From Macrostomum lignano (taxonomy: Eukaryota), in NCBI GenBank assembly GCA_002269645.1, contig NIVC01000832.1:77068-141067 (forward strand): a stretch of 64,000 bases of DNA, read 5' to 3'. Positions 4,247 to 58,439 of the stretch are shown piece by piece (the first letter of the stretch is position 1; the number at the start of each line of letters is the position of its first letter). Position numbers and translations under genes: made by a program. A model generated the notes under the pieces. It made no database searches. It was given only the letters and a program-made list of their open reading frames with translations, and had not been told where the DNA came from.

Positions 4247-5465
4247 GTACCTTCATTAAATTTTCCCTATGCATAATAAATTCTTCCTTCCTAGCCTTCT
4301 TATTTTTGGTAACTGGTCTGATCTTAAAGCCTACTTCTGATAGTTGTTCTACAATTTCGTAAACTGCCCTTTGCTTTCTGTGAAATTTGTTAGCCTCTGT
4401 GTTAGCAATTAATGGATTATTAGTAAATACTAAGCTTCCTACATGCAATGTTTTCGGCTTAGGCTTGTTGGAGTACTCCTGCTCACGGTTTTGCTGCACT
4501 AACTTTAATCTCTTTCTCGTAGTTCATGGCCTTCCTGCAGATTCTGCTGATGTTCCTGGACATAAGATCGCAAATCCTGGAACTGTTTTCGCTCGTTCAG
4601 CTCATTGTCACAGGGCATTCTGGCCTCGTCCAAAGACTAAATAGTGCGGTCTAAATCCTGTGGCAGTGTGCGTGCTGATTCTCAGAGCTGTCATGCAACC
4701 TGCCAACAGAACGTCCCAGTCGGAATGCTCCTTCTCCAGTAAACAGGTGAGAGTTGATTTAATCTGCTTATTAAGGTTTTCTACTAAGCCATTGCTCTGC
4801 GGATGATAACCAGTTGTTCGAGTGTGTCTAATGCCATAAAGGTCTAAAAATTTCTTTAAGGCCCTACCAGTGAACTGTGTTCCCTGGTCTGTGTGAACCC
4901 ATTGTGGAATCCCAAAATCAGCGAAAACTCGTTCTTGTAGAATTTTGATAACTGTTTTAGCCTTCTGATTCCTAATTGCGAATGCAAATGGAAACTTGCT
5001 AGTGCTGTCTATGACTGAAAGTACATATTTGTTACCTGCTTTGCTAGTTTGGCCAATAGGTCCTATCAGATCTGTGTTATCTACGTTATCTACCAAACGG
5101 TTCGACTACAGGATAGATCTAAATTGGTGCCTTGATTCTTCGTCTAGTTTTGCTTTCTTAGCATGATTTACATTTGGCTAGATAGCGTTCAACTGCTATT
5201 GCTAATCCTGGCCTCCAAAATCGAGTCTTAATTCTCTGATAAGTTTTATCTAGACCTAGGTGTCCCGCTAACGGTGAATCATGGAATTGGTGAAAGACTT
5301 CACTATCCAGAGACTTGGGCAACACTACTTTTGGATCAGTCTGCCCCACAGATGTCTACCTTGGGTAAACCATCCTCAATTCTGAGCAACTCATAGTAAC
5401 CTAAAAGGTTCCTACAGTCGTGGGTTAACCCTAGTCATTCTTGTAATGTCGGTTTAGGCGAGTCT
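4242..5465 (-). mobile_element. Ty3/Gypsy LTR-retrotransposon pol remnant: integrase (H2C2 zinc finger, DDE core, C-terminal domain), frameshifted
   Basis: 5158-5349 HDSPLAGHLGLDKTYQRIKTRFWRPG...CKSC (HHCC). 4608-5096 LIGP...YVLSVIDSTSKF...HTDQGTQF...TTGYHPQSNGLVENLN (D,D35E). 4242-4499 C-terminal piece. Confidence 0.9.
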
Positions 5466-7159: not shown

Positions 7160-8225
7160 CTACAACAACAACAACAACAAGGTACTGCTCCCGCCGGCCA
7201 CGCAGTAGCCAGAAAGGGGGGAGCAGACAGAAAGCGCGTCTCTGGGCCATTGCCCTCAGGAAGTCGCATCCCCCTGCTTGGTCCGGGGCGCCAGCGTCAG
7301 TCAGAAGTCGGTCAGGGTATCGCACCTTCGCCCTTGGCCTCGCCTCCGCGGTCTTTGCAGCTTGAGCAGCAGCACGTCGTGTAGCGGCTCAGGACAACGG
7401 GCCTCCAGTGGCCAGCCAGTCGAAGTCGCCGCCCGCGCAGCAGGTCAGAAGGCTGCGTCAGGCGCGCCCTAGTGTAGAGCGCGGCGCTGGTCTCGCTGCC
7501 TGGGCCGCTGCGCACTCCGAAGGTCACACGCAGCATTGCCGCATGCGCAGCGTCCAGCTGCCTCTAAGGCGCCCGTTAGGGTCCAAGTCTCGGCGTTGTA
7601 CAACAGGACAGTCTCGACTACTGCCTGAAACAGCCGAGCCTTGAGCCCCTCGTCCAGGGCCTCAGATTGGAGCACGGAGCGCACAGATCGAAATGCGGCT
7701 TAGGCCAGTCCTCGTCGTCTCACCAGGTCGTCGGCAACGTACGGCACGGAGCCGCCGAGGTACACAAAGCGCTCGCAGCGGGTAAGCATAAACGCATTCC
7801 CGGCAGCGTCTCGGTAATTGATCTCGACCGGCAGGTCGGAGGGCACCGTGAACACTACCGTCTTCCGCGCGTTCAGCTTGAGGCCGACCCGCGACACTGC
7901 CGCCGTCAGGCCATCAAGCAGCCGCTGGGCACCTTCAGCCGTCGATGAAAGTAGCGCGAGGTCGTCCGCGTAGCCGAGAACGGAGAGCCGCTTTTCCGGG
8001 TGCCGCCGACTCGTGCGTCTTCTCAAAAGGAAGCCGTCATCCAGGTTAGGCAGGCCGGTACTCAGCACCCAGTCCAGTGCCAGCACAAACAGAAAAGGCG
8101 CCAAAGTATCACCCTGCAGCACGCCTGACGACGTGCTGAATTGGTCTGACAGTCCATCTGGCGTCATCACCGAAGCGGTCGTGTCCTGGTACATCGCCAT
8201 GATGGCGGAAATCAGTTGCTCCAGC
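7160..8225 (-). mobile_element. 5'-truncated RTE-clade non-LTR retrotransposon (RT C-terminal half)
   Basis: GVLQGDTLAPFLFVLALD...LGYADDLALLS...GLKLNARKT...FVYLG; KARLFQAVVETVLLYNAETWTLT; (GTT)n 3' tail at ~7163-7180. Confidence 0.9.
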
Positions 8226-8566
8226 AGTTCTAATGCCCGTAGCACCCGTCTTAGCGGCCGGATGGGCATACCGCTACGGGTGGCCGCGAGTAGGTGTCGC
8301 CTTGCTCGTCATTGGTGGGCTTGCAGGCTGGCCTCCAGCGACGCAATAGTGTGCTGCGCGGCTAGCAATTCCTGCTGCTGGTCCGCTGCCATATTTAATT
8401 CCTACATCGGCATGAAAGGGTTGAGAGAAGCACTAATTACACATCAGATGTACATGTAATCTATTATAAGAATAATTAATTACAAAACTGCACCTGAATA
8501 GCCAATTCAGCTTGCGCCACTGCGGCGTGGCATCTGGCTTCTAATATAGCTTCTTGGTCAGCACCG

Positions 8567-8655: not shown

Positions 8656-9204
8656 TGTGTCTATTTTATCGTAATACTCGTAATTATGTCATCAACAATA
8701 CGGGGTTATATATTGAATCAGAATTCAAATAAAAGTCGAAGACGAGTTACTGGAATAACGAAGTATATTTAATTTACATTAGAAACAATATGCACACTGG
8801 TAAAGCTATGATAAATGTTAGTGTAACACGAAACACAGTTTACACTTTAGAGAAATATTAGGAAACAGAATAAAAAAGAATATTATTATGTCCATGACAT
8901 CAGTATGAAGCACTCATATGCTGTATATATCATACTTTCGTCCAGAATACATGCCCGTCGTTTACCCCGCTTCTAGGCGGCTGCGACACCGGGCGTAGTA
9001 TCGGATGAATTTCCGGATGCTAATTTGCAGACATCCAGAAGTCATCCGGAATTTAGTTCTGTTCTAAGGGGGCCCGGTTTCTCATGCACAGAGCAACCGG
9101 ATTGATCCGGACATATGGCGGACCAAAAGTCCGAAAAACAACTTTCGTCCGGATTTCACCCGGAATTCACTCCTGACTTTTAAGAATAATTGGGAAGAAT
9201 AATT

Positions 9205-10362
9205 GGAAAGTGATCACTATTCAGGTCGTCGCCCACTTTGAAGTCCTGGATGAACGGGACAAGGTCGCTGGAGGCCAGACCCAGGTCCAGCACATTCCGA
9301 GAGACCGTACCTTGCCGGTGGGCTATTCTGGTAAATTGACCTGGTTGATTTAGGACAGTGGGACGATTTACAGGGTCGCTACAGAGCCAATCATGAAGCT
9401 GCTGACCAGCCCTGTTGTTGCGACTTTCGCCCCCCCCCCAAAAAAAAAGGTGTGTCTGGCGTTGAGGTCACCCATAATAAGAGAATACTTGGCCGAGGAC
9501 AGCCGAGTCTAAAGACCGACATCAAGGTTGTCAGGCGATGGAGACCGATAGATCAGGGCCAGTTTGAATGCAGGGCAAGGGCCGTCAAGAGGGGTGACTG
9601 TGCAGGTAAGAACCTCGTGGTTGATGTTGTCGTACGAAAGCTGGACATCCGCTACATTCACATGAGGGGTGTGTACGAGGAGGAGTCCGCGCTTCGTATT
9701 TGGAAGGTCGAACCGCACTGCAGCGTAGCCCAGGAATGTGCATATTTAGGTATTTTTCAGGATGGTCTCAGAAAACAAGGCAATATCCAACTTTTGGTCT
9801 GAGATCCAGAGCCCGAGTTCTTTTAGTTTTGGTATTATCCCCCTGCAATTTAGGTGGGCGATCTTAAGCCCTGAGGCAGTGGGGTTCGAGCTATCGTGCC
9901 CGTTATTACCGAACGTATTTAAACATTTACATTCTAGGTCTGGCCATCTACCTGTCGCCGGGGAGCGCCAAGCAGCTGACCAAGACCTTGGTGACTTTCT
10001 AACCCGCCTACGAGGACACGGGACAGAACCCTACTCACTATGTCGTGCACTGTTTGACCAGAGCCTTCAGTAGTAAGCGGCCCTTCGGCTATGCTCGGCC
10101 AGAGGGTTGTAAGCACCTCAGCGAGTGCTTGAACCAGGAGAGGAAGTAGCCCACTCACCATTCCTAGATATTCAGAATTTACGCTAGCAATCGGTGGCGT
10201 ACTGTTGTTTGGTGGCATACTCGGCACAGTCGTCTGGGTCATGGAGTCGGTCAATTCGCGCACGGGGCGCTTTCGGCTATGGAGGCTAGGGCCAGTCAGC
10301 CATGGCAAATCGCCTCCTGTCGCCATTGACGCCCGTGCCGCGGCGTCGGCTGACCTAGACAT
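9205..10362 (-). mobile_element. Fragment of a family-A-related LINE (ORF1 C-terminus plus APE endonuclease N-terminal part); called A'
   Basis: Colinear with 17555-18700: RFDLPNTKRGLLLVHTP, LKIAHLNCRG...FSETILKN, GDLNARH, and VSGLLPLLVQALAEVL...HQGLGQLLGAPRRQVDGQT. Confidence 0.9.
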
Positions 10363-10740
10363 TTTTTCTTTCTTCTTCAGCGCTCGTCTATGCTCCGAAG
10401 AATGTGCTCGAAGAATGCTCCGGAGAAGCGAGAGGGCCAAGCCCGGGTCGGTGAGGAGGCGCTCCACTTCAGTGCCGACCAGGCGAATGCGGTGCGCGTC
10501 CCCCCTCGGGCAGTTGTAGATCGCGTGCAGGCTCGAGTCCGGTGCCCCGCAGTCCTGACAGAGCGGGGAGTCCGTCAGGCCGAAACAATGTCGGACCTCG
10601 GTGGCGAGCATTGAGGCACCGGTTCAGAGTTGGCAGACCCCCGTGTGCTCGGTCCGGCTTCTAGCGTGGAAGGTCGGCCAGGTCGGGGGCATAACGCTGT
10701 CGACAAGCGCACGGCGGTCTCGGCGAATGGCAGCCTTGGC

Positions 10741-12337
10741 TGTAGAAAAAATACTAAACTAAACTAAAGACTATTTAATTGGAGTTAAATTGTAGGATCA
10801 GATAAGCCAGTAAGTGGGCGCAGGGCCCAAACCGATATATTTATAGAACATTTAACTTTGGGGGGTTGAGCCCAGAAAAATAAAGAGAGGGGGTGGAGTG
10901 CGCGACTGAGGAAAGAGGCGAGAACGGAGAGCCAATCAGAACGCAGCAAGGGAGAGAGAGATAAGAGTAACAAGATTGAGCTAGACAGAGAGAGAGAAAA
11001 CAGAGTAAACAGAGACAAGTGAAGGTGAACTAAAGAAATGACTAGGAAAGTCGCGACATGACTAGACAGAGAGATGTAGATGTAGTCTTTTCAGTCTTCT
11101 CATTGGTTCAAAAACTACTCAATAAAAGTCTAAGTTTAAAATTCGGTCTTAATATTTTGCATTCACTCTAATGTTTTAGTATTCAAATTCTTACTCATTA
11201 TGTGTTTTTCAAATCGTTCTGTACACCATTTATTGTGAATGTGTTCTCCAATTTAATTCGACCTAATTCTAACTCATTAATTTCAATTGGTAATGGTACT
11301 CGAATATTAAAAAAAATGTTCCATTTTTTGGGGGGAGTGTCGCGACTTTCCTAGTCATTTCTTTAGTTCACCTTCACTTGTCTCTGTTTACTCTGTTTTC
11401 TCTCTCTGTCTAGCTCAATCTTGTTATTCTTATCTCTCTCTCCCCTGCTGCGTTCTGATTGGCTCTCCGTTCTCGCCTCTTTCCTCAGTCGCGCACTCCA
11501 CCCCCTCTCTTTATTATTCTGGGCTCAACCCCCCAAAGTTAAATGTTCCATAAATATATCGGTTTTCGTCTCTGGTTGCCGGCCTCTCAATCGTCTCGTC
11601 TCTGGTTGCCGGCCTCTCAATCGTCTCGTCTTTGGTTGCCGGCCTCTCAATCGTCTCGTCTCTGGTTGCCGGCCTCTCAATCGTCTCGTCTCTGGTTGCC
11701 GGCCTCTCAATCGTCTCGTCTTTGGTTGCCGGCCTCTCAATCGTCTCGTCTCTGGTTGCCGGCCTCTCAATCGTCTCGTCTCTGGTTGCCGGCCTCTCAA
11801 TCGTCTCGTCTGCCGGCCTCTTCATCGTCTCATCTCTTATTGCCGGTCTCGTCTTCGGAGTCTGTGCCGGCAGCATATTCACATTTCAACTCGGGCTGTC
11901 GGTCTCGTCTTCGGAGTCGGTGCCGGCGGCATTTCTCTCTTCTCGACTGTCGTTCTCGTCTTCGGAGTTGGGCCGGCGGCATATTCGCAGCTCTACTTGG
12001 GCTGTCGGTCTCTGCTTCGGAGTTGGGCCGGCGGCATATTCTCTCACTCGGTTGTCGGTCGCTGCTTCGGAGTCTGTGTCGGCAGTCAATCTCACCGGCC
12101 TCTTGTCAAATTTTCTTCACTCAGTTCCACTCCTCTCTTGTCAATGTATTCAGTCGTCTCCAGTCGTTCTTTTCATCAACCTGATTCTCATCTCATCTCA
12201 TCTCTCGTACTCAACTGACGATATTTTTAATATTTTTTCTGTACTGTACATGTACCAGTTGTCATTAGTTAAAAATTGCACATTTTTAAGGGGGAGGGCT
12301 GGTCTATCCAGTCTCATCTATATGTCGATGGATAGAC
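10741..12337. mobile_element. Unclassified 1.6-kb insert flanked by GGC direct repeats, with an internal long inverted repeat and a terminal hairpin
   Basis: GGC at 10738-10740 and 12338-12340. Inverted arms 10829-11058 / 11338-11565. GTCTATCCA...TGGATAGAC stem at 12302-12337. Confidence 0.65.
11566..11820. repeat. 30-bp tandem repeat (~8 copies), with degenerate continuation to ~12100
   Basis: CGTCTCTGGTTGCCGGCCTCTCAATCGTCT repeated. Confidence 0.95.
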
Positions 12338-12674
12338 GGCAGCGCCCAGCGAAATGGCAGCCGTGGTTTGCGGTAAGCGGGCTGCGGCGTCCGCGGCTCT
12401 GTCCGCGGCTTCGTTAGCGGGTATGCCACAGTGGGCAGGGACCCAGGCGAGGTCTATGTCATTGAGATCGCAGGTGCCCAGGCTGATGAGGAACCACCAG
12501 CAGGAGAGGCCGCTCTCGGTGCGCTGTTTAAGGGGGCCCTCTTGCAGGGCCGTGAGCGACGATAGCGAGTCGCTACACAGCCGGATGCGGGCTGTGCGAG
12601 GGGCGATCTTCTCCGCGACAAAGGTGAGGGCGTCCTTGATAGCGCGCATCTCGGCGTCGAAGGAGCTGCATCTT

Positions 12675-13500
12675 GATATTTTTATGACTTATCTAAATAT
12701 GTACAGTGCAAAAGTGTTCTGAATTGGTGAGCCAACAAACAAACTTAAGGCATTAGAAAGAATAGAGAGTCATGCAGGCAGGAGGCCCCCTCCCGGCAAG
12801 GTCATGGATTTGAGATTTTTCAATCTGCGATGGCATTCCTAAGTTTGGTGGTCACAGGAACTTTGTGACCTGGTCTAAGCCAGTCTTTTATGTCCAAGTC
12901 AAAGCCGTGGACCCCCGTAAGCACGGCTTTTTTGTACCATTTCTTGCCCAGGTTCCAGATTCTCTCCTTGAACCTGGGAATTTTGGAGATGTCATGTAAG
13001 TAGCTAATTTTAGTATAAACAGGCGCATCTAGAGAAATTCTGAGTGCCTGGTTTTGGAGAACCTGAAGTTTTTGCAGGAGTGTGTCCGAAGCATTTACTA
13101 GAACTGGAGCTCTATACGTCATATCACTTTCTATGTAAGACCTGTAGATAAGTCTTAGCGCAAGCTGAAAGATTCTGGTATTGCGAGCAATTCTTCTTAA
13201 GGACCCAAGTTTGGAGAACGTTCTGCCAGCAACCTTGGAGATGTGCAGATCATATTTAAGTTATTTGTCAAGAGTAACACCTAGAAAAGTAACGGAGTTG
13301 AAATACTTGATCTCTTCATTGCCAAGCTTAAGCAGAGGTTTATCCGGACCTGAGATTCGTTCGTTTTGATACTTGAAGAATGAAATAACCTTACTTTTGG
13401 AAGGATTAATACTAATTCCAACATTATCAAGCCATTTTTCCAGGGTGACCAAGTAACCATTAAGACGCTTGGCGGCCATGCCCGTTTTCCTAAAAGATAA
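12675..13500 (-). mobile_element. 5'-truncated LINE related to family B (RT thumb and ORF2 C-terminus); called C
   Basis: GISINPSKSKVI...VTFLGVTLDK; APVLVNASDTLLQKLQVLQNQALRISLDAPVYTKISYLH closely parallels 22829-23200. Confidence 0.85.
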
Positions 13501-15405: not shown

Positions 15406-18260
15406 CTAGGGCGGGTTTTGGGCCGCCGCATTTGTAGCTGCTTGTCTATTAGCTTGCCTCCTCTTCAGGCTGTCCCATAGCAGGTTCAGCACTGGGGGGC
15501 GGTTGCGGGCAGCTCTAGAGAGTTCCGGCTCAATGTGGAAATCGTGGTGCCCAGCAGCCTTCACCTTGGAGAGCCAGCCTACGCCCAGGGCACGAATCCT
15601 GTCTGCCATCATAGGCATGGCTGCCAGCTCATGCAGGTAGGCTACCTGGGTGTAACTAGGGGCACCATAGCAGATCCTAAGAGCTAAGTTTTGGATTTTC
15701 TGGAGCTTATTGAGATTGCTGGGTGCAATGATGTTCAGCACCGGGGCACCGTAAGTCAGCGCACTCTCAACATATGCCCTATATAGCATTTTAAGGGTAT
15801 TACTACTTAGCCGGGTCAGCTTGGCAATGCGGTTAATGGACAGGGCAAGCGCCCGGCCGTGGCTGACTACTCTTTCAACATGCGAGTTAAGGGTCAGCCG
15901 GTAGTCCAGGTTCATGCCAAGGAACCGGACCTCTTCTTGGTATTCAAGACTCGTGCCTCCAAGTTTCAGCTTAGGGCGAAGGTCGAGCCGCTAAGTTGGC
16001 TTATAATTGAATGCAATAACCTGACTCTTGCTGGCGTTGATCTTAATCCCCTGCCCCCCACACCACTTCCACACGCGGTCAAGGTAGAGTTGCAGGAGTG
16101 TCTTGAGGCCAGCAAAGGAGTCCGCCGAGGCCCAAATGGCCATGTCATCGGCAAATTGGCTTCGCTTGAGGTTTGGTTGTCTTGGCCGAGGCAGGGTGCT
16201 GATAAAGAGCAGGTACAGGAAGGGGCTCAGAATACCACCTTGGGGGACGCCTGCCTGTAGCTCGTACGGCTGGCTGAGCTCCCCATTTACCTTCACCTGC
16301 ATTAGCCTGTCTGCTAGGTAGTCAGAGCAGATCCTGACGAGGGCGTCCGGCGTGTTGACTTCGTACATTCTGAACCTCAGGTAGTCATACCACACCGAAT
16401 CGAACGCCGCTTGTACGTCAAGGAGGATGGGCAGAATCATTTTTAGTTTAGCTTTGCCCACCTGGACGTCTTGGACGAGGCGGACAAGATTATCATAAGT
16501 TGAGTGGACCTTCCGGTACGCACATTGATCCGCGCCGAGGATACCCTGGCCCTCAAGATGCTTCATCAGCCTCCTCACCAATAACTTCTCGAACACCTTG
16601 CCGAGACAGGAGGTCAGGCTAATGGGCCGATAGGATCCCGGGGATTCAGGAGGTTTGTCAGGTTTAGGAATCATCGTCATCACCGCTTTTTTTCCACTGC
16701 GATGGGAAGATGCCCGTACGATAGCAATCATTGAAGAGTTTAGTGATGCGGGTGACTGCTATAGGCTCTAGGCCATATTTAAGGACGCAGATCGGAACTT
16801 TGTCTAGGCCCGGAGCACTGTCAACTTTTAGGTGGTCCAGCTCCCAGAGGGTGTCTGTAACAGAAAACGGAGCCTCCAGGGGGTGGCCCATGTATGGATC
16901 TGCGCCCGAGGGGACTGGTCTAAAGATGGGGAGCTTCATAGCCTGCTCAACCCTCTTCTTCAGATCCTCGTCAGTCGATGGAATCGGGCGCATTTTGACA
17001 TCTAGTGCTCTCGCTAGCATATCAGCTTTGTCTGAGTCAGTATGTGCGAGGGTGGCGCCATCGTTTAAGGACGGAATAGTGGTGCCCTTTTTGCGCCCCA
17101 TCAATTTTTTTGTGTCCTGCCAGAAGTCCTTGACATTCTGGCATTGACTTTTTTCAACTATTTTCTTGCACATTTGGGTAAACTGGCCTTGCTCAAACGA
17201 ATGAATAGCGCTTTTTATTTCTTTCGCCTTTCTATTCGCGAGCAGGCTAAAATTGTCATCCCTGGTACTGTGGTACTGACGCCGGAGCTTCCTCCTCTCC
17301 TTGATCATGGCAATGATCCTCTGGGGGAGGGCTCTACGGCCGTTTCTGACCGGGACATTGTCCTCGATGGTTTTCTGGATCGCGTTCGTGATGACGTCGA
17401 CCTCCGCATCAATTTGCTGGTCTGGAGGCCACGCATGTACCAGTTTTTCCATCAAGGAGTTTTGGAACTCTTCCCAGTTTGCTTTGGCAAAGTTCCTAGC
17501 CTTCTCCGGCCCTTGCCAATCTGGGGAGTTACTCGCCAGGGTGAGTATGATTGGGAGATGGTCACTGTCCAGGTCAGAGCCCACTTTAAAGTCTTGAACA
17601 AATGGGACGAGGTCACCGGAGGCTAACCCAAGGTCGAGCACATTCCGGGACACAACGCCTTGCCGGTGGGCTATTCTTGTGAACTGGCCTGGTTGGTTGA
17701 GAACGGTGGGGCAGTGGGACGGATCGCCGCAGAGTAAATCATGGAGCTGCTGCCCTGCTCTGTTGTTGCGACTTTCAGCACCCAAGAAGCTGTGTCTAGC
17801 ATTGAGGTCTCCCATGATGAGCGAGTATTTTGCCGAGGACAGCCTCGTCAAAAGTCCGGTGTCGAGGTTGTCCGGCGACGGGACCGGTAAACCAGGGATA
17901 GTTGGAAAGGTGGACATGCGCCGTCAACAGGAGTGACCGTGCAGGTAAGGACCTCATGGTTGACGTTGTCGTACGAGAGCTGGACGTCTGCTACCTTAAC
18001 CCGTGGGGTGTGAACAAGGAGGAGTCCGCGCTTCGTATTCGGAAGGTCAAACCGCACTGCAGCATAGCCCGGGAAAGTGCATACTTAAGTATTTTTCAGG
18101 ATGGTCTCAGAAAAACAGCGCAACATCCAATTTCTGGTCTGAGACCCAGAGCCTTAGTTCTTTTAGTTTCGGTATTACCCCCCTGCAGTTTAGGTGGCCG
18201 ATCTTAAGCCCTGAGGCAGTGGGGTTCGAGCTATCGTGCCCGTTATTACCGAACATATTT
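15406..18260 (-). pseudogene. LINE-A ORF2: AP-endonuclease plus reverse transcriptase, broken by frameshifts and an in-frame TAA
   Basis: LKIGHLNCRG, SET, GDLNARH, VLDLGL, SDHLP (APE). PGLDKVP, YRPISLTSCLGKVFEKL, LDVQAAFDSVW, GVPQGGILSPFLYLLF, QFADD (RT). LYRAYVESALTYGAPV. Confidence 0.92.
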
Positions 18261-18273
18261 ATCCTATATTATT

Positions 18274-21204
18274 CTAGGTCTGGCCACCCACCTGTCGCCG
18301 GGAGGCGCCAAGCAGCTGACCAAGGCCTTGGTGACTGTTCGATTCGCCTTCGAGGACCCGGGCCAGAACCCTGCCTACTACGTCTTGCACCGTTTGACGG
18401 GAGCTTTCGGTAGTAGGCGGCCGTTCAGCCGGGCTCTGCCAGAGAGTCGACAGCACCTCAACAAGTGCCTGGACCAGGAGGGGAAGGAACCCACTCACTA
18501 GTCCCTGAAGCTGGGAGACTTCTCTGGCAATTGGCGGCGTGTCATTGTTAGTAGATTCATCCGGCACAGTTGTCTGCGTCTCCGAGTCGGTCGATTCGCG
18601 CACAGGGCGCTTCCGGCTTGGGAGGCCAGGGCCTGTAAGCCAAAACGAGTCGTTGCCCCCTGTCGCCGTTGTCGCCCGTGCTGCGGCGTCGACCTAACTC
18701 GGTGCTGCTGCCGGTGCTGGTGCCGGTGCGGAGGCGGGGGCAAGTAGCGCCGCTGCTGCCGCTTCCGCTGCTGATTCTGCTACTGCCGCTGCTGCCGCAA
18801 TAGGTGATGGAGCGGCCAACCTGTCTGTTGCTGCCGCGGCTTCTTGGGCGCCCGCTGCGTAGGCAGCCGCACGCCTTTGGGCCGCGTTGTGGCAATCGAC
18901 CGCCACCTGGCAGTGGCGGTAGTTAGCTCTGTGCTGCTCGTTGCAGTTAGCACATTTCACCGCATTCTGGTTATCGCAGTCTCGCCAGTGGTGCTCGGCC
19001 GCGCAGATCCGACAACGCTTGGCCGCCTTGCACCTCTGGGCGTGGTGACCGAAGCGCTGGCAGTTTTGGCACTGCGGTGCTCGTGCCGGAGCTGCGGTCT
19101 TGTTTGGCTCGCACTGGTAGGTTGTGAAATCCGTAACGATTCCTGTGGCTAGACAGGCATCTACGGTCTGCTTATTTCGGACAAAGACCCTGATTAGGTT
19201 AGTAGGCTTGTTGTCTCGCCTAGCAGTGATGCGGCTAGCTGATATAATATTAAGACCCGCGCTCTCTTGCAGGTGCCGCTTGAAGTCGCTGGCCTCGACC
19301 TCCTGAGGCACGCCGCGCACCACGAACGAGTAGACCGCTCGGGTCATCGGTCGCTGTGGCGCAGCAGGCCTAGCTCTTGGGTCCGGTCGAGCCTTTGGTA
19401 GACGCCTCGTTACCGGCCCTCCAGCAAACTGGGTCTCGCGCTGAGGCCCACGCAGGAACAACTGGTGGTCTCGCGGAGTAGCCGGAAACACGAGGAAGCC
19501 GACTTCATGGGTCAACTTCTTGGTGAGTGTAGCCCGGGCCGACCCTTGGAAGTTGGCCGCGAGCCACTTTAGAAACTCTATTTGACTAGCTTCTGCCGCA
19601 GTGTTAAACACTACTGGTACCACATTACTTCCCCGGTTATTGTTCGAGGGCCGTGATACATCCTGGTTGTTATTCGCCGCCATTTCAGCGTAGGAACGGC
19701 GATAGCCGCCCCGCCCCGCACCGCCGACGTTGCCGCCGCCGTTGCCCTGGGCTCGTGGGCCGCCAGGGACTGCAGAGCCGGGCGCGCCGGCCGCTCCGCG
19801 GTCTCCTGGCTGCCCGCTGGTCATAGCTGTCCGGGAGCCCGGCGCGGCCAGGCTGGCGCCCGCCCGGCCACTGCCAGGCCCTTGCACGATAGGTGCTGCT
19901 GCCGCGGTCGAGCCTCCGTGTCCCAGTGTGCCGACGCCAGGTGGATATGTCACCCTAAAGGTGAGAGAAATGCGTACACCCTCCTGGACGCCGACTCCTG
20001 GGACACTGTGCTTACATGCGCCGGACATTACTATCACTGAGCCGGGCTTTGTCTCGAATTGCGCTACTATTCGCTGGTCCTCATTGTTCTTAATTAGGAA
20101 TTGGCGTACTGCACCAAAGGAGACCGTAGCGATGAAAGGGTCCCTGCCGAGTTCGGATTCGTTATCGGCGTGGAAAGGTATGCAGTCATCAGCCGTTTCG
20201 TAAAAGTTTATGAGGCAGCTGTTAAATTTTGGTGCACCAATATCCGCGTTGAGCTCGAGGTAGTCTCTCATGTCTTCAACTAGCGGGTGCCATTTTTGGT
20301 TAGCGCCGAGCGGAACTCCAGAGTAAGAGTACTCCGGCCCGAACCAAACCACTCGCCGCTGTTCCTGAGGCCGGTGACGTATAGCGATAGGCAGGAGGTC
20401 TTGGATCAGCCGGTCATAGACATCGGCGGCTACGCTACGGAGCATATTCGGGTAATACTCCAGTCATACGTCTTGGCTAGGCAGCTTGACTTGAAGTGCC
20501 GATTTGTCCGCGCCTCTTGGAAAGCTAATTGGATTTTCATACGGTATGCTTGTATCCTCAGCGTCAAGATCAACACAGCCGGCATTCGCGGAGTCTGCCT
20601 CAGACGCAGAATCAGATGCTGCTGCGGCTGCGTTGGGGTCCTCGGAGCCGGTTTGGCCAGCACCTTCCAACACAGTCGCAGAGCCGCTGTCCGACGAAAT
20701 TGAAACGACACTGCCCGGTGACTTGTGCTGCTGTTTTGCCGTGATAGCAAGTACTGGCGACTTCGGAATGGTAGACACATTGTCACCCGTACAATTTGGT
20801 TTCGCTTTAGGTTTTTCGGCATTGTTTGGCAAGGTCTCAGGCGTTGCCTTAATTGCCTGTTCTCTGGGCGTCGGTGGCGTATCCGATGGCGGAGCGATGG
20901 TACAATCCATTTCAGCTGGGCAGCCAAGGGCTGCGAGGCTATAAGGGGCATCCGGCGGGATGCAATCAGCACTCGTCTTGGAGGCCCTATTACTTTTGGG
21001 CTCCTTGAAAGCTGCACCAGCTGCGCCTGAGATCGTAGCTGCGCTAGTAGGACCGGCAGGTGGCCGTTCGGATTTTCTGCCTAGACCAAGCAGGCTACGG
21101 CCGTACAACTCCATTTTGTCTATGGAGGATCTATTGTCGGCACGCTTCGCCGCAGGTAGGCCAGATGGTTTAGCAATCTTTGAGGGTGATACCTGCTTGC
21201 TCAT
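18274..21204 (-). CDS. LINE-A ORF1 in a single frame with two in-frame stops: low-complexity N-terminus, AlkB 2OG-Fe(II) dioxygenase (~19951-20463), RRM-like region, three CCHC knuckles (18910-19071), helical C-terminus
   Basis: ORFs 20464-21204, 18694-20445 and 18274-18603 share one frame. NSCLINFY...FHADNESELG...VSFGAVRQF...KHSVP...RISLTFR. CQNCQRFGHHAQRC, CRICAAEHHWRDC, CANCNEQHRANYRHC. Confidence 0.9.
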
Positions 21205-22828: not shown

Positions 22829-25560
22829 TTATAATATGGCTTTCCTGAATTTAGTCGTAACGGGTTCTCTGAACCCTGGTCTGCTCCATTCTTTAAGATC
22901 TAAATGAAAATTATGTACCCCTGTGAGCAGAGCCTTTTTGTACCACCTAAGGCCTAGGTTCCAAATCCTCTCCCTAAGCCTAGGCATCTTGGTGATTTCG
23001 TGTAGGTAGCTGATTTTAGTGTATATGGAGGCACTTAGCACAAATCTCAGTGCCTGATTTTGAAGCCGCTGAAGTCTCTGGATGATGTTATCAGAGGCGT
23101 TGACGAGGATTGGTGCTCCGTAGGTCATGCTGCTTTCTATGTAGAACCTATAAAGAAGTCGTAGCGCAAGCTGGGATATTCTTGTGTTGCGAGCGACCAA
23201 CAGTTTTTGAGACGTGTTGCCTATAATTTAGATCCTTTTCGAGCGTGACGCCAAGGAACGTGACAGAGTCGTGGTATGGAATTGAGTCCTGTCAAAGTTT
23301 GAGCGGAGGTTTGGCAGGGCCGGTGGACCAGGGACTCTTGTACCTAAAGAAAGCCACCGCCTTGCTTTTGGTGGGATTAATGGATATGCCAATATCATCT
23401 AGCCATTTTTAGGACAACAAGGTAGCTGTTCAACCTCTTGGCCGCCATTGTAGAGGTTCTGGCGCTCGCCCAGACGGCCAGGTCGTCCGCAAACTGACTC
23501 TTCTTGACTTTAGTGTCACGCGAGATGGGGATCGAGCTGACATAGATAATGAATAGCAGTGGAGAAAGTACCCCTCCTCGAGGAACTCCAGCAGCGGGCC
23601 TAAAGCCCTTGCTAATTGCCCCCCCCCAGCCTGGATGATCTCCCTATCCTCAAGGTAGCTGGAGATGGTCCGAGTCATGTTGTGCGGCAGGTCGCTCTCC
23701 AGGAGACGATACCGGAGATAGCTGTGCTAGACTCCGCCAAAGGCACCCTTGACGTCGAAGAAGACACCGAGCGACACATGTCTCCATAAATTCATTTTTA
23801 GTATATCGTCTGTGAGTCGCACAATGTTGTCAAACGTACAATGATCTTGTCTGTACGCACATTGGTCTTCATTAATAATGCCCTTGTTTTCTAAGATTTC
23901 TGGCAATTATTTTTTCGTAAAGTTTTCCCAGGCAGGAGGTTAGGCTGATAGGCCAGTAATTGTTTATTTCATGCCTAAACTTCTTTGGTTTTGGTATCAT
24001 TTTGATAGTCGCCCGCTTCCAGGCCTTGGGAAAATAGCCCAGAAAAAAGCTTGTGTTGAAAATTTTTGCAATAGTTCTAACAGAGTCCGGACTAAGCCCT
24101 CGTTTGAGGACAATGTTTGGGATCTGATCAGGGCCAGGGGCTCCCCCAGATCTAAGATTTTTTGTTTCCATGAGGACGTCTATATCCAGAATGTTAAGGA
24201 TGTCAGATTCCATGGCTTCCCTACCAGGGTCATCAGGGTCAGTTCTGTCCCGGTGATAGGTCAGGGCTCTGGCCATGCAGTCGTAGGGCCGGAAGATCTC
24301 ATGATTTTCCTTAGAAATAACCTCCTTTTAGATAAGGGACTTGGTGTCGGGATGAGGCTGCATTTGGTCCTTGAGGAAATCTTGAAATAAGTTTGCAGTT
24401 TCTTGCTCAGTTTCGGCAGTCACCCCTTTGTAGCTAAGGGCGGGAAATGAGACTGGTTTAATATATTGTCCGGTCATTTTCTTTATGTCGATCCAGAATT
24501 GACAGGGTTCTTTTCTGTAGCTAGTTTTAGCAATTTTCTGGCATACATTCTCAAATTTTCTGTACCTATGCATTCTTATAGCAATTCTTATTTCTTTAGC
24601 GGCTTGGTTTGCCTGTACTCTAAAAGCGTCAATTCTGGTTTTTTGAAAAGTTTTTGAAGCTTTCTTCTGTTCCTAATCTTTTCTACAATGTCTGGAGGAA
24701 GCTGTTCTCTCGGATCCCTATCTGGGACCACCTACTCTATTGTTTCATGGATTTTTTCCGTGAGCTTATCAACCACGTTGTCAAGATCATCGGGAGTGAA
24801 GATTCGGGAACGAATCATGCTGCAGTTTTCTAAATTATCTTGGAGTGCATACTTAAAAGCTTCCCAGTCAGTGTGCCAAAAACTCTTGGATGGCTTTGGT
24901 TTAACCTTGGAGCAGGGGTCGAGGAAGACTTTAATCATAATGGGTAGGTGATCACTATCAAGGTCATCGCCCACTAAAACATCACTAACAGAGTTGACTA
25001 GATCAGGGGAACAAATACCTAGATCAAGAACATTCCCGATAATGTTGCCCCCTCTATTATAAATCCTGGTGCAGTCACCAAAGGAGTTGAGGATAGAGGG
25101 GGGATCAGGGTGATTATCGAGCCAATCGAATAGCTGTTTGCCTGGGAAGTTTTCTACACTGTCCCCACCTAGCATAGAGTGACAGTTGAGATCCCCTAAT
25201 AGTAAGGATCTGGGTTGGGAGAGCAGCTGCTCAAGCAGTGCAGTGCTGATATGGTCAGGATTGGGAGCTCTGTAGATAACAGAAATCCTAAGAGTACTAC
25301 AGGGATTGTTGTTGGGAGTGACATCAAGGCTGATAAGCTCATAATTGGAATTGTCATAATATTTATTGACATTTCAAATTTTAAAGTTATTCTTGTAGGC
25401 AATTGCCAGTCCCCTTCTGCAGTCAGGAGTGTCATACCTGATGATGGCATAACCTTGTACATAAAAAGTATCAATATTTTTAAGATCGGTTTCAGAGAAA
25501 ATACTGTTACAAGTCTGTCTTTTGTATTGCGTTATATTTACGCAAGTTGTGTGCCGTGCA
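22829..25560 (-). pseudogene. LINE-B ORF2 (APE plus RT), multiple frameshifts
   Basis: FSETDLKN, GDLNCHS, VLDLGI, DSDHLP; PGPDQIPN, WKRATIKMIPKP, WPISLTSCLGKLYEKII, SQFADDLAVW (~23480-23500), FYIESSMTYGAPIL. Confidence 0.9.
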
Positions 25561-25878
25561 CTCTCGGCTCTTGCAGCCGTTGCTCTTATCAGTCTTCTTG
25601 AATACTTATGTATTTCTATTTTTTGTCACGAAGGCTCTTTGACACTTGCGCCAACTAATCGCAGTACAGGCAAATAAACTTGTCTATGGCAATTACAAAT
25701 TAAAGCTCAATCTGCTCGGGCAGAAGCCAGCCCGCAGCAAAGACCAATGTCAATATCGTCATTGTGCAACCACATAATAATTTCGTGCATTTTGTTGCTT
25801 AATTTGTTGCAGTTAAGGTGTCCTATGTTTAGTGCACTTTTGGAAGATTTATTATAGAAAGCCATAGTAAGTCAGTGA

Positions 25879-28145
25879 TTATTCAGGGCTGGATCCGCCT
25901 CCGCTCACCGAAGTGGCTTTGGTTTCCCCTGCCCTGACAGCGGGCACTCTTCCGTGATTCAGGAAAGTCGCCAGGACTTCCGTCACTACCCGAATAGCAA
26001 GCTGGCTTGCTTCCCAGGCAGTGAGCAGACGCCCCGGTTCGATCTCTATGATCCGGTTGAGTGCCCCGAGAACCACCTCGAGCACGTCACCCTGAGTAAA
26101 GCCCTCTCACCGTTTCCAGCAGAAGAAGTGGCGGCATTGTCAGTGTTATTTGGATCGGCATTGATTGGTGTCATTGCAGGCTTCTTGGTCACAGGAGCTT
26201 TAGTCTCAGACGGCACTGCTGAATGGGCGGCAGCGGCGGCAGCAGCAGCAGCAGACGACATTGCTGGTTGGGCGGCAGCAGCAGCAGCAGTAGACGGCGC
26301 TGCTGGCTGGGCGGCAGCAGCGGCAGCAGCAGCAGCCTTGAACGCTTTGGAAGCTCTGTTCTCGAACGCGATTGGTCCTAGTACTGGCACCTGATTGACA
26401 GCCTCCGCGTACGAGACAGGGCCAGGTACGCCAAATGTCTCAGCTAGATTTTGAGTAGGTTCTAATTTTCTAGTCTGTTTGAATTTAAGTCTTAAAGTTT
26501 GAACTCTATGATGCTCTCTTTCAGTCGCCCTCTCATTTGCATGCTGAACCTTTGGGCATTTGAAGGAGAACGCCGGGTGTTCACCCCCACAATTAGCGCA
26601 CTTAAAGCCCGTATCTTTTGGGCAGTCGCCGGAATAGTGCGCCCCGGCACACTTGTTGCAAACAAAACCGGCGTTGCACCTGCTTTCGGTGCGTCCAAGG
26701 CCTTGACACCTGTGGCACTGAACTTCCTTGACCGGTGGAAGATTGTGCGATTCTTCGCACCCGAGTTTCAATGCCCCAAGCTTAATGCCGTTCTCCAGGC
26801 AGGTGTCGTAAGTTGCCCTTGACTTTGTAAACATCCTGATGAGAGGTGTCGGTTGGCCTGAGGCCTTCGAGACAATGCGTACCGCACTGTCGAATTAAAA
26901 ATGTGCCTGATTTTCATCTAAATATTGCAGCAGTTCCTCGGCTTCCACGGCTAGAGGAACACCTTTGACGATGAAGGAGCGGACCTGCGGCGATTTAAGG
27001 GGCTTACGCAGCCGATCATCGCCTTGGTGCAGTGGCCTATTTGACGGCAGGCGCCTAGTGACAGTGTGCCCATTAATTTCGTTAACTTTTAGTGTTGTTG
27101 TCAATAAGTTGTTCATATCGTGTGGAGAATTAGTAAATTACGTAGTGTCCTGAGCTATGACACGATGATGACACGATGCGAGTGTTAGGAAAGTTTGTTT
27201 TTAAGAAATATTCGAATTTAATAGGATTCTTAGCCTCAACGGGCATCTCAAATACAACTGGCGTAATTTTAGTTAATTTAGAATTATTAGATTGTTGTGA
27301 GCTTGGCTGCTGAGTGCGTGCTTGTGGCTGCTGAGTGTGTGTGCTTGGCTGCTGAGTGCGATTGGTTGATTGCTGAGTTGCTAGCCCCACTCATTATCGT
27401 GATGCTACCACTGGCAAGCCTCTGCGAGTAGACTATATTCTAAATCTGGCCCTTTAGTTCGAAGCTGGAAGTCTCTCTGGGCTCCCAGCGACACCGACAC
27501 AATGGTCGGGTCGTGGCCTAACTCTGGTTCGTTGTCAGAGTGCCATGGGATGGCTACCGATCCATCTTTATAAAATTTGATCAGGCACGAATTAGCTAGT
27601 GGCACTCTAAGCTCGACGTGAAGCCAAGTGGCTAAGTGAGTGACGACTGGGTGCCAAGCGTCGTTGCACTCAATCTTAGTACCCCCATAGGTGTACTCAG
27701 GCCCATACCAGACTATTCTCCTGGCCTCAGGCTTGCCCTTGGTTAGATGGTGGTATGAGTTTGGATAAATGTCTTCCATTATAATTTTAATTAGCTTGGC
27801 TTCAGAAGATTTGAGCTGCTGATTTTGCAGTTAGTTAAAGGCTGGCTAGTTTTGTCATCTGTGAGGTCAGGTTCTGGTAGACTGAGTGTCAATATGTTAG
27901 TTGCTTTTCCTAAGTCTGCTAGTTTACTACTCTTGACAGGCTGACTCTCACCATCGCTGACCGCATGAGGGAGGTTCTTCAGTCACTGTCTGCTGTTGCA
28001 CACAAGACGGCTCATTGCTGGAGGACGCAGAACAGGACCTTTGGTCTCGACCGGAAGAGGACCGGTTGTTGCGCTTCTTGGTGCTGACTGGCGGCGAGTC
28101 AGTGTCTCTAGAACCACATCTTTTGCTATTGACTTCTACTTCCAT
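25879..28145 (-). pseudogene. LINE-B ORF1: partial AlkB domain (27405-27830), Gln-rich linker, RRM-like region, zinc knuckles, Ala-rich tail
   Basis: RRIVWYGPEYTYGG...NSCLIKFY...WHSDNEPELGHDPTIVSVSLGAQRDF; SFIVKGVP; CHRCQGLGRTESRC, CNKCAGAHYSGDC, CANCGGEHPAFSFKC. Confidence 0.87.
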
Positions 28146-34464: not shown

Positions 34465-34523
34465 GCTGCAGAAAACGCATCGCTTCTGTCTTCGGTTAGC
34501 TATCGAATTTTATTCTAATACTC

Positions 34524-34777
34524 GTCATTGAATTAGATGCTGCAGCTGATCCGATTGCTGTCGTAGATTCGGTGGCAGTCGCTGGTCCGGTTGTCATTGA
34601 ATTAGATGCTGCAGCTGATCCGATTGCTGTCGTAGATTCGGTGGCAGTCGCTGGTCCGGTTGTCATTGAATTAGATGCTGCAGCTGATCCGATTGCTGTC
34701 GTAGATTCGGTGGCAGTCGCTGGTCCGGTTGTCATTGAATTAGATGCTGCAGCTGATCCGACTGCTGTCGTAGATTC
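34524..34777. repeat. 69-bp tandem repeat, ~3.7 copies (Thr/Ser/Ala-rich if read on the minus strand)
   Basis: GTCATTGAATTAGATGCTGCAGCTGATCCGATTGCTGTCGTAGATTCGGTGGCAGTCGCTGGTCCGGTT repeated. Confidence 0.95.
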
Positions 34778-34863
34778 CATCCATTACAGGTCTTTTCTCT
34801 GTAGTACAAGTATGCATGGGCAGCATCACCTTTTTTACTGCTCCTCTTACTCAGACAGCAAGG

Positions 34864-37760: not shown

Positions 37761-38279
37761 ACTCTCATTCTCGTCTTGGCTATCCTGCTGCTACTCAGCA
37801 TGGAGATCTCCGGCTTTCTAGCCGGCTTCGTCATGCAGGCCCAGGTGGAGAAGGAGGCGAGGCAGAAGTTTCTGGCCGAGATGCGAGCCTACTCCACTTC
37901 TAACGGGACCGGTGATGCCAAACAGTGGATCGATCTCACCCAGCAGGCCCTCGGCTGCTGCGGAATCGACTCGCCTAAAGACTGGCTGGCCTTTGAAGCT
38001 CAGCCGCCTGCCAGTTGCTGCGCAGGCAAAGTTGCCGATTGTGCCAGCCCGTTTCCTGTCGGTTGCGCTGCCCAGATTCACGCCTGGCTGTCCACCGAAC
38101 TGCGCGCCTACTCCCTATGCTGCTTGGGCGCCGCCGCGCTGCAGATCTGCGGTCTTGGCGCCATTTTTGCTAGACGAAACCGACAAAGAATCGCCGCGGC
38201 GACGGCGGCTGTTGCGGCGGCGTCAGCGTCTGCTTATGGAAGATTTGGAGAGGCCGCGAGTAGCGTGGTGGTGCGGTAG
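37761..38279 (+). CDS. Tetraspanin exon 2 (TM3, EC2, TM4); joined CDS ~245 aa
   Basis: Acceptor CCTTCCCAG|; LLLLSMEISG, QQALGCCG, PPASCC, DC, GC (6-Cys EC2), LQICG; stop TAG. Confidence 0.9.
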   Translation, partial: TLILVLAILLLLSMEISGFLAGFVMQAQVEKEARQKFLAEMRAYSTSNGTGDAKQWIDLTQQALGCCGIDSPKDWLAFEAQPPASCCAGKVADCASPFPVGCAAQIHAWLSTELRAYSLCCLGAAALQICGLGAIFARRNRQRIAAATAAVAAASASAYGRFGEAASSVVVR

Positions 38280-43932: not shown

Positions 43933-44182
43933 CCAGAATCGCCACAACCATATTCTCTTTGAGAATCTCCATGGACCCGTTCACGACAAAGTAGATGTAT
44001 TTGAGCACATCGCCGGAGTGGACAAGATACTCTTCTGGGCGGCAGAATACTGTCTGGATTTGTTGAGCAATCGCTTTCAGACAGCCCTGACTTGCGGTCT
44101 CAAAGATTGGCAGAGACAAAATCTCTCGGTTGAGGTGTAGGGCGATGTCGCCTCTGAGCTCCTCCGGGAAATCTTTCATTAT
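43933..44182 (-). CDS. elk: ELK-type KCNH channel exon (C-linker / CNBHD)
   Basis: DFPEELRGDIALHLNREILSLPIF...GSMEILKENMVVAILG. Confidence 0.92.
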
Positions 44183-44279
44183 CTGGAATGAGGTGTGCGT
44201 TATGGAGCAGGTGGGGATATGTGTGTTTATGGGACAGGTGAGAGAGTCGGGAAGTGTGTTTATGGGACAGATGAGAGAG

Positions 44280-44968
44280 TCAGGCAGTGTGTTTATGCAA
44301 AAGGTGAGAGAATGTGTTTATGGGACAGGTGAGAGAGTCGGGCAGTGTATTTATGCTACAGGTGAGAGAATCGGGCAGTGTGTTTATGCTACAGGTGAGA
44401 GAATCGGGCAGTGTGTTTATGCTACAGGTGAGATAATCGGGCAGTGTGTTTATGCTACAGGTGAGAGAATCGGGCAGTGTGTTTATGCTACAGGTGAGAG
44501 AATCGGGCAGTGTGTTTATGCTACAGGTGAGAGAATCGGGCAGTGTGTTTATGCTACAGGTGAGATAATCGGGCAGTGTGTTTATGCTACAGGTGAGAGA
44601 ATCGGGCAGTGTGTTTATGCTACAGGTGAGAGAATCGGGCAGTGTGTTTATGCTACAGGTGAGATAATCGGGCAGTGTGTTTATGCTACAGGTGAGAGAA
44701 TCGGGCAGTGTGTTTATGCTACAGGTGAGAGAATCGGGCAGTGTGTTTATGCTACAGGTGAGAGAATCGGGCAGTGTGTTTATGCTACAGGTGAGAGAAT
44801 CGGGCAGTGTGTTTATGCTACAGGTGAGATAATCGGGCAGTGTGTTTATGCTACAGGTGAGAGAATCGGGCAGTGTGTTTATGCTACAGGTGAGAGAATC
44901 GGGCAGTGTGTTTATGCTACAGGTGAGAGAATCGGGCAGTGTGTTTATGCTACAGGTGAGATAATCGG
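44280..44968. repeat. 33-bp minisatellite, ~21 copies
   Basis: GTGTGTTTATGCTACAGGTGAGAGAATCGGGCA. Confidence 0.97.
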
Positions 44969-44974
44969 ACACAC

Positions 44975-45174
44975 CTCGCTAGGGTTGATGCCCCTGTTGA
45001 TTGACCACATGGCCTGGAAGAACTCCTGCATCCTCCGCTTCAAGTGTTTCGGTATGTGATGAGTTCTCGTGAAGTCTTTCAGCTCCTGAGTCTTGGCAGT
45101 GTAGGCCGCCCTCTTGGCGTACATTTTCTGGATGAGGGCGGTCACGTTTCCAAAAACGGCCGCGTGCATCAGGG
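44975..45174 (-). CDS. elk: ELK-type KCNH channel exon (S6 and C-linker)
   Basis: ALMHAAVFGNVTALIQKMY is the ELK-type S6 (EAG and ERG have ALMYA/SLMYA). Confidence 0.92.
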
Positions 45175-58352: not shown

Positions 58353-58439
58353 CTGGGGAGAGATTATGTGGTTTGAGAAATATTAGAGACGATTGCGTCA
58401 TCTAAAACTGCGATGAAGAATGAAATGAAAAGTGGGGTG

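Follow-up and report, generated by a model that had tools for sequence, protein, structure and literature searches.

Introduction

The open reading frame 1 (ORF1) proteins of long interspersed nuclear elements (LINEs) are regarded as RNA-binding chaperones, and to our knowledge few enzymatic additions to them are known. ORF1 proteins that combine an RNA recognition motif (RRM) with CCHC zinc knuckles, along with accessory domains such as an esterase or a PHD, are said to have been described by Khazina and Weichenrieder in 2009 and by Metcalfe and Casane in 2014. Here we analysed a 64,000-nucleotide stretch of Macrostomum lignano DNA (contig NIVC01000832.1 of assembly GCA_002269645.1, positions 77,068 to 141,067 of the forward strand), hereafter the window. 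This repeat-rich eukaryotic window harbors two retrotransposons without long terminal repeats (non-LTR), named A and B, which follow one another head to tail, both on the minus strand. As in the known RRM-CCHC elements, an RRM and then three CCHC knuckles are encoded upstream of an ORF2 with apurinic/apyrimidinic (AP) endonuclease and reverse transcriptase, and ORF1 has a modular build with room for extra domains. In A and B the ORF1 also encodes an AlkB domain, of which B retains only the segment 27830-27383. With some reserve, we favor the interpretation that this segment is the remnant of an ALKBH3-like ORF1 module belonging to a clade of animal LINEs, captured once, inherited vertically and having a role in template demethylation.

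Comparable systems have been described in plants. Plant RNA viruses (Flexiviridae and others) also have AlkB within an RNA-templated selfish element, and their domain is regarded as the product of a single capture followed by inheritance (PMC2553587). These are plus-strand viruses with the domain in the replicase, whereas the LINE AlkB is part of the ORF1 chaperone of an animal element, which depends on a reverse transcriptase to copy its template. A Ty3/Gypsy element of the orchid Phalaenopsis carries an ALKBH5-like ORF which, like the LINE domain, is proposed to act on the RNA of its own retrotransposon (PMC9289625). In contrast to the LINE AlkB, which is ALKBH3-like, fused within ORF1 and present in lineages sharing less than 40% identity in ORF2, the orchid AlkB is a separate, extra ORF of a plant LTR element, is of the ALKBH5 type that erases N6-methyladenine (m6A), is recent, and is found in one genus. 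Our search of the full-text literature, outside of which lie Repbase and subscription journals, retrieved no paper that describes AlkB in LINEs or Penelope-like elements. The enzyme family and the habit of mobile elements of carrying AlkB are known; the host element, the position of the domain and the AlkB subtype are new.

Results and discussion

AlkB is part of ORF1 in uninterrupted relatives

A LINE-AlkB profile was searched against 1.84 billion representative proteins. Right after the relatives of the query itself, this search retrieved four long ORF1 proteins of 757-962 amino acids (aa), P0007, P0008, P0010 and P0012, originating from the public read-run assemblies SRR31628392, -394, -403 and -434. 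All four have the same architecture as the ORF1s of the window, from AlkB to the C-terminal helix. At locus L002 the element is fully open, with an ORF1 of 843 aa that includes AlkB and an ORF2 of 948 aa in which the Pfam domains Exo_endo_phos_2 (E=2e-11) and RVT_1 (E=3e-39) were recognized, and at locus L005 an endonuclease ORF directly follows ORF1. The order common to these ORF1s comprises a variable N-terminus, AlkB, a low-complexity linker, the 'PVVF' domain, the RRM, three CCHC knuckles and a C-terminal helix, while ORF2 of the family consists of an AP endonuclease and a reverse transcriptase. We also considered that the AlkB ORFs might be host genes located beside LINEs; this was rejected, as P0007, P0008, P0010 and P0012 are single ORFs running from AlkB through the knuckles.

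Further relatives were found in M. lignano, those of B being known from proteins only. P0001 showed 53% identity to A, and its locus L001 (GenBank contig NIVC01002892) contains two tandem A-like LINEs, both with an AlkB-bearing ORF1 and the first with an ORF2 of 926 aa. P0002, P0004 and P0005 were 56-63% identical to B overall and 65-71% within AlkB, and they possess a complete AlkB including the distal part with LRVNLTFR; P0003 starts at 'RINLTFR', after which come the same linker, RRM and knuckles. When the whole ORF1 of A, the tail of which is alanine-rich and of low complexity, was used as a protein query, it gave one match. It is worth pointing out that P0001, P0002, P0004 and P0005, listed as 'Fe2OG dioxygenase domain-containing' or hypothetical proteins of M. 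lignano, are LINE ORF1 fragments and not host repair genes, and that their annotation in UniProt/NCBI could mislead gene-family counts.

Both window copies have an ORF1 and an ORF2 of the kind expected of LINEs. An AP-type endonuclease followed by reverse transcriptase was found in ORF2 of A (Pfam RVT_1, E=1.7e-32; Exo_endo_phos_2, E=1.9e-8) and of B, where Exo_endo_phos_2 was recognized at 25175-24732 (E=5e-4) and tblastn matches cover residues 7-910 of an intact ORF2. These ORF2s lack RNase H, and the ORF1 upstream is of the RRM+CCHC type; its RRM-like block and three CCHC knuckles could be aligned over 8-10 ORF1s, both being seen by alignment, with no Pfam call for either. A first-pass annotation of the window had proposed that B represents a second, divergent LINE family with AlkB at the same ORF1 position as A, and that the domain is a lineage trait. 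Both proposals were supported: A and B share the domain order at only 36-37% identity in ORF2 (~820 aligned sites), and the same architecture is present in four deep lineages, the intact L002 element included.

In the intact elements a conserved small ORF of 123-124 aa lies between ORF1 and ORF2, at L002 (positions 4346-4717) and also at L003, L007 and L008, overlapping the start of ORF2. No Pfam match is on record for it, and it may be either genuine or spurious.

The domain resembles ALKBH3

The AlkB domain of A matched the Pfam family 2OG-FeII_Oxy_2 (PF13532, curated cut-off 31.2 bits) with E=6.3e-20 and 72.6 bits over profile positions 45-194. In B the ORF 27779-27405, together with an upstream extension to 27830 on the minus strand, reads ...EARRIVWYGPEYTYGGTKIECNDAWHPVV...NSCLIKFYKDGSVAIPWHSDNEPELGHDPTIVSVSLGAQRDFQLRTKGP and matched the same family with E=2.8e-16 and 60.7 bits, well outside what chance would produce, covering only positions 46-141 of 194. 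The HxD motif, the distal His, NxY (NFY) and RxxxxxR (RISLTFR) are all present in A, which lacks four residues immediately ahead of the distal His (SGAC----KH vs SGNCQKRLQH in an M. lignano relative).

In a search of all solved structures, human ALKBH3 was the best sequence match of both domains (E=1e-19 for A and 1.2e-15 for B), followed by ALKBH2 (1e-10 and 3e-7, respectively), and neither domain matched ALKBH5 or FTO. The fold evidence concerns the A domain only, that of B being truncated: its AlphaFold2 model (pLDDT 88.8, pTM 0.86) adopts a double-stranded beta-helix fold, and Foldseek ranked ALKBH3 first, with a template-modeling (TM) score of 0.84, followed by ALKBH2, Escherichia coli AlkB and ALKBH5 (TM ~0.62). 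Human ALKBH3 (PDB 2IUW, 8JNK and 8JNR), an enzyme that clears 1-methyladenine and 3-methylcytosine from single-stranded nucleic acids and the best match in both sequence and fold, is 29-31% identical to the LINE domain; HxD...H, NxY and RxNLTFR are identical, and the beta-helix core with an N-terminal helix is common to both. The human protein is free-standing and has 286 aa, whereas the LINE domain is embedded in an ORF1 of ~750-980 aa and carries LINE-specific substitutions: Leu replaces the Trp ahead of the distal His, Arg is missing after NxY, and NSCL contains a Cys. The assignment to ALKBH3 is a best-match argument rather than an orthology test, and the nearest outsiders in the tree described below are proteins of ~200 aa.

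Together, the sequence matches and the predicted fold indicate that the domain is a real AlkB, of the ALKBH3/2 type rather than of the m6A-eraser type. This bears on the idea that it could act as an m6A eraser like ALKBH5 or FTO and in this way alter how stable the LINE transcript is, how it is translated or how the host recognizes it. Such an activity would have a precedent in the LTR-retrotransposon AlkB for which m6A demethylation was shown experimentally (PMC9289625), and m6A influences L1 activity in mammals (PMC7873242). Nevertheless, with ALKBH3 and ALKBH2 ranking so far above ALKBH5 in sequence as well as in fold, and with a catalytic core that shows ALKBH2/3-type motifs, we regard m6A erasure by the LINE domain as unlikely.

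A single capture is the probable origin

For the phylogenetic analysis, the 150 best AlkB matches, the window domains and human ALKBH3 were aligned to the profile, and a neighbor-joining (NJ) tree was built from 147 non-redundant sequences. In the NJ point tree the nine LINE AlkBs formed an exclusive clade among the 147. Several residues set the LINE domains apart from the others. The position two residues ahead of the distal His is occupied by Leu, in place of Trp, Tyr or Phe, in 7/7 LINE AlkBs and in 0/137 of the others; Arg is absent after NxY in 9/9, and Pro follows W[FY]G in 9/9, each state being present in 22/137 of the others; Cys in NSCL occurs in 8/9 LINE AlkBs as compared with 19/137. 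Only one of 138 outsiders had four of the five states scored, namely P0011, a protein that adjoins a Penelope-like element.

The topology of the domain also matches that of the rest of ORF1. The AlkB block supported the quartet (A-lineage, P0007/8) | (B-lineage, P0010/12) with 85% bootstrap, unrooted, and the same quartet, with A and B on opposite sides, was recovered from the non-AlkB block of ORF1 with 72%; the N-terminal half of ORF2 leans the same way, with 49-54%. Moreover, the insertion point of AlkB in ORF1 is identical across four deep lineages. Because of the signature states, the congruent AlkB and non-AlkB ORF1 topologies and the identical insertion point, we prefer a single capture preceding the A/B split, and on these sequence comparisons we consider it probable. 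The first-pass annotation had likewise dated the capture before the split, a claim that is supported, though not proven, by the exclusive NJ clade, the shared states and the congruent topologies.

A number of observations weigh against this interpretation. The strict bootstrap value of the LINE-AlkB clade was only 18%, in an alignment anchored on a profile that was itself built from LINE sequences, and the smallest clade holding the A and B lineages was free of outsiders in 40% of the replicates. AlkB distances between LINE lineages are ~0.9-1.0, no smaller than those to the nearest free-standing AlkBs, so that the tree alone is weak and would allow two captures from one donor. The gain of AlkB is in addition unrooted, because no AlkB-less relatives of the clade were found: a profile of the non-AlkB part of ORF1 gave two weak CCHC matches and missed known relatives, which makes it uninformative, and a metagenome scan with a three-sequence alignment gave 19 distant RRM-CCHC loci, none with AlkB upstream. 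Those 19 loci, at 25-46% identity and matching mostly in the knuckles only, are too distant to be used as a sister group.

Alternatively, the two lineages could have taken AlkB independently from the same ALKBH3-like gene of a host or a microbe, or one of them could have acquired it and later handed the ORF1 module to the other through recombination between LINEs residing in one genome. The low support for LINE-AlkB monophyly would agree with independent capture, as would the A-B AlkB identity of ~44%, which is no higher than that to some free-standing AlkBs (distances ~1.0), and so would the related AlkB beside the Penelope-like element, which implies that the domain moved or was captured more than once. 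Independent capture is, in turn, hard to reconcile with one and the same ORF1 insertion point in four deep lineages, with four shared derived states, one of which is absent from 137/137 outsiders, and with the exclusive LINE clade of the NJ point tree; a module swap would tend to break the match between AlkB and non-AlkB ORF1 topologies. Taken together, we find these two routes improbable and retain a single capture before the A/B split.

The protein P0011 deserves separate mention. It is encoded by an ORF of 569 aa at L004:3134-4843, from read run SRR19193851, and its AlkB is sister to the LINE AlkBs. On the same strand, 108 bp downstream (L004:4951-7083), lies an ORF of 710 aa with a DKG motif, a reverse transcriptase 'YIDD' motif and a GIY-YIG-like motif. 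By these motifs the second ORF marks a Penelope-like element, and it seems that retroelements of a second class have also acquired a related AlkB.

AlkB has diverged in step with the element

Between A and B, identity was 43.8% in the AlkB core (53/121 sites), 36.4% in the 'PVVF' domain (77 sites), 40.0% in the RRM (75 sites), 38.6% in the knuckles (57 sites) and 23% in the C-terminal helix (43 sites), and the N-termini and linkers were not alignable. The first-pass annotation had described AlkB as visibly more similar between the families than the flanking ORF1 sequence. This is correct in direction, and the difference is significant with respect to the helical end blocks (23.5%, p=0.007), but it is not significant against the folded RRM/CCHC blocks (38.3%, 80/209; Fisher p=0.35) or against ORF2 (36%, p=0.11). 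AlkB has diverged at the pace of the other parts of the element, a pattern that fits vertical co-inheritance and not exceptional constraint on the domain.

HxD, the distal His, NxY and RxNLTFR are retained in all lineages with uninterrupted frames, and the catalytic residues (HxD, distal His, NxY, RxxxxxR) are complete in P0001, P0002, P0005, P0007, P0008, P0010 and P0012. That these residues are invariant, despite an AlkB identity of only 33-47% between lineages, argues for a catalytically active enzyme in the live elements and not for a mere binding module. We infer, with good support from these alignments, that the catalytic residues have been kept under purifying selection. Within a family, copies taken from different read runs show no difference in their DNA, and between families the differences are saturated. 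The earlier suggestion that the domain was kept in active lineages agrees with these data, since the ORF1s of 757-962 aa retain all four catalytic motifs and one of them is accompanied by an intact ORF2.

The B copy is a pseudogene with a private AlkB deletion

The ORF1 of B had to be pieced together from three frames, with its relatives as a guide, and contains at least six frame disruptions (Table 1). The segment between the N-terminus and AlkB (27950-27831) is broken by stops and frameshifts. Within AlkB, the motif NSCLIKFY at 27593-27570 confirms the N to K change in NxY that had been noticed on first inspection: the codon at 27578-27576 makes the motif read KFY, in a column occupied by Asn in 135/137 non-LINE AlkBs and in 8/8 of the other LINE AlkBs. 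The frameshift previously placed near 27400 is real, but its position is ~27444-27439.

An internal deletion of ~130 aa fused '...IMSGA' to the Q-rich linker and removed the third iron ligand and RxxxxxR. Of the iron ligands HSD is kept and the distal His deleted, and of the 2-oxoglutarate residues NxY is mutated and RxxxxxR deleted. A tblastn query with the C-terminal portion of AlkB from a B-like protein detected no AlkB C-terminus in any frame of B, in agreement with the initial observation that neither a distal His nor RxxxxxR follows SGSITIMSG (within 27412-27383). The sequence had also been said to pass into TQQP repeats at this point. A 21-nt repeat does exist there, with 3-3.7 copies at 27297-27378 (Tandem Repeats Finder), but in the correct frame it is part of a normal Q-rich linker and replaces no domain: the third-frame sequence 'GLATQQS...' aligns with the Q-rich linker of the B-like ORF1, for example 'NLATQQSSIQ...' in P0003. 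We therefore rejected the possibility that the CACTCAGCAGCC repeats are an expansion that took the place of the AlkB C-terminus, the correct frame being the ordinary Q-rich linker of the family.

Further downstream, the 'PVVF'-RRM-CCHC region of B was 35.7% identical to A over 199 aa, and ORF2 carries an insertion in the endonuclease region in addition to several stops and frameshifts. The first-pass annotation had left two explanations for the incomplete domain, a decayed copy or a lineage retaining only half of it. The first stands, because P0002, P0004 and P0005 have the full domain; as to the second, the loss is private to the window copy. A B lineage that as a whole kept only the N-terminal, substrate-binding half of AlkB in a non-catalytic form would account for the fact that the only B copy of the window lacks the C-terminal third of the domain. 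It is hardly credible given that those three M. lignano proteins, in which the recommended look at other B copies did find H...RxxxxxR, have a complete domain with all catalytic residues, and given that the window copy, with its N to K change and with frameshifts and stops throughout ORF1 and ORF2, is a pseudogene. Judged from its reading frames, the B copy is dead, and the loss of the AlkB C-terminus is private to it.

Table 1. Positions of the LINE copies and of their ORF1 parts in the window (position 1 is the first nucleotide of the window)
Feature	Positions	Strand	Evidence and remarks
LINE B, decayed copy	22859..28145	-	ORF1 28145-25882, ORF2 ~25860-22859; tblastn with M. lignano and L002 ORF1/ORF2, three-frame translations; outer limits approximate
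B ORF1 N-terminus (MEVEVNSKRCGSRDTDSPPVSTKKR...)	27951..28145	-	aligns with the N-terminus of B-like P0005 (KWCSRDTDSPPSVSTKIR)
B AlkB, N-terminal two-thirds	27444..27830	-	pre-AlkB helix, RRIVWYGPEYTYGG, NSCLIKFY, HSD iron ligands (27542-27534)
B AlkB continuation, shifted frame	27383..27439	-	aligns with P0002; ends at deletion junction ~27385
B Q-rich linker (GLATQQSTNRTQQPSTHTQQPQARTQQPSSQQ)	27292..27387	-	third frame; holds the 21-nt tandem repeat; aligns with P0003/P0002 linkers
B Q-rich linker and 'PVVF' domain together	27387-27133	-	third frame
B 'PVVF' domain, RRM, three CCHC knuckles	26553..27267	-	frameshift ~27135, in-frame stop 26897-26895
B RRM, first part	27137-26898	-	second part and knuckles 26894-26094, beyond the in-frame stop
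B three CCHC knuckles	26720-26553	-	downstream of AlkB
B ORF1 C-terminal helical block (VLEVVLGALNRII...)	25882..26091	-	reached via frameshift ~26092; 60.5% identity to P0002
LINE A	15406..21204	-	ORF1 21204-18274 (single frame), ORF2 ~18250-15406 with several frameshifts
A AlkB core (EQRRVVW...RISLTFRV)	19951..20364	-	Pfam, ALKBH3 match, AlphaFold2 model, alignment
A-like third copy, 5'-truncated	9195..10300	-	covers the helix region at the ORF1 C-terminus and the N-terminus of ORF2; nothing of AlkB retained

A proposed role on the template RNA

LINE ORF1 proteins bind the RNA that encodes them, as is established for L1. By coating the RNA that encoded it, an ORF1 protein with an AlkB domain would place a Fe(II)/2-oxoglutarate demethylase on the template of its own element. 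The modified bases 1-methyladenine (m1A) and 3-methylcytosine (m3C) disrupt Watson-Crick pairing and stall reverse transcriptases, and treatment with AlkB is routine in tRNA sequencing for reverse transcriptase read-through of both. The domain might remove m1A and m3C oxidatively from the template RNA and, once these lesions were cleared, target-primed reverse transcription could run full length, to the 5' end. Enzymes of the AlkB family remove m1A and m3C from both RNA and DNA, and the AlkB domains of plant RNA viruses have been shown to do so on RNA (PMC2553587); by analogy we propose a template-repair role for the LINE AlkB.

Two further points count on the other side. Both window copies are dead and do not by themselves show function in the source genome, and ALKBH3 acts on single-stranded DNA (ssDNA) as well, so that the target could be DNA. 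Under the latter possibility, the enzyme would repair alkylated ssDNA during integration, either where the target site has been nicked or in newly made cDNA; the closest structures are those of ALKBH3 bound to ssDNA, and ALKBH3 repairs both ssDNA and RNA, as reported for the AlkB family in general (PMC2553587). The domain resides, however, in the RNA-coating ORF1 protein, with its RRM and CCHC knuckles, and not in the ORF2 protein that works on DNA, and a DNA target therefore appears doubtful to us. As for template RNA as the target, we advance only tentatively the broader proposal that the LINE clade and, separately, at least one Penelope-like element encode an ALKBH3-like demethylase that erases m1A and m3C from their own RNA template.

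A conserved and catalytically complete domain of this kind, present in ORF1 of several deep LINE lineages, would be without precedent in the literature searched, where no other non-LTR retrotransposon is reported to encode an enzyme of nucleic-acid repair or demethylation. It leads to the testable idea that methyl lesions or marks on the template RNA limit target-primed reverse transcription, and the intact element at L002 is directly testable. Were this idea true, RNA base methylation, whether from chemical damage or from host defence, would be a real barrier to target-primed reverse transcription, against which two classes of retroelements would have evolved a counter-measure that is also used by plant RNA viruses. 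It would also tie together three cases in which RNA-templated parasites acquired AlkB independently, namely plant viruses, the orchid Gypsy elements, and the LINEs together with the Penelope-like element.

Surroundings of the two copies

The A copy is dead as well. Its ORF1 is interrupted prematurely at two places by in-frame stops (TGA, 20466-20464; TAG, 18696-18694), 12 nt are deleted at ~20019, before the distal His of AlkB, and its ORF2 is frameshifted. At the ends of A and B we found no clear poly(A) or simple-repeat tail and no target-site duplication. A blastn comparison of the window with the loci of the relatives gave ~66-69% identity, in ORF2 only. The third, 5'-truncated A-like copy was 52-64% identical to M. 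lignano ORF2 by tblastn, and the translation of the ORF 9934-10611 resembles the tail of the A ORF1. On the minus strand at 9195-10611, this copy meets another, different ORF2-like sequence at the C-terminal end of the latter, which carries a zinc knuckle, inside one ORF of 225 aa, an arrangement that is probably a nested insertion.

Other retroelement debris was present on the minus strand of the window. It includes an LTR-element integrase core at 4608-5096 (rve, E=5e-16), a reverse transcriptase fragment from another family at 7700-8269 (RVT_1, E=1.5e-12), as well as a fragment from the 3' part of a LINE at 12829-13464 with 36% identity to the C-terminus of M. lignano ORF2. The only clear piece of a host gene seen near the elements was an exon of the tetraspanin family at 37776-38279 on the plus strand (Pfam, E=1e-18). 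Long tandem arrays, which give rise to repetitive ORFs in multiple frames, occupy 11421-12417, 34496-34780, 44130-45059, 58398-59204 and 62979-63888, and are similar in style to those flanking the LINEs at the M. lignano locus L001.

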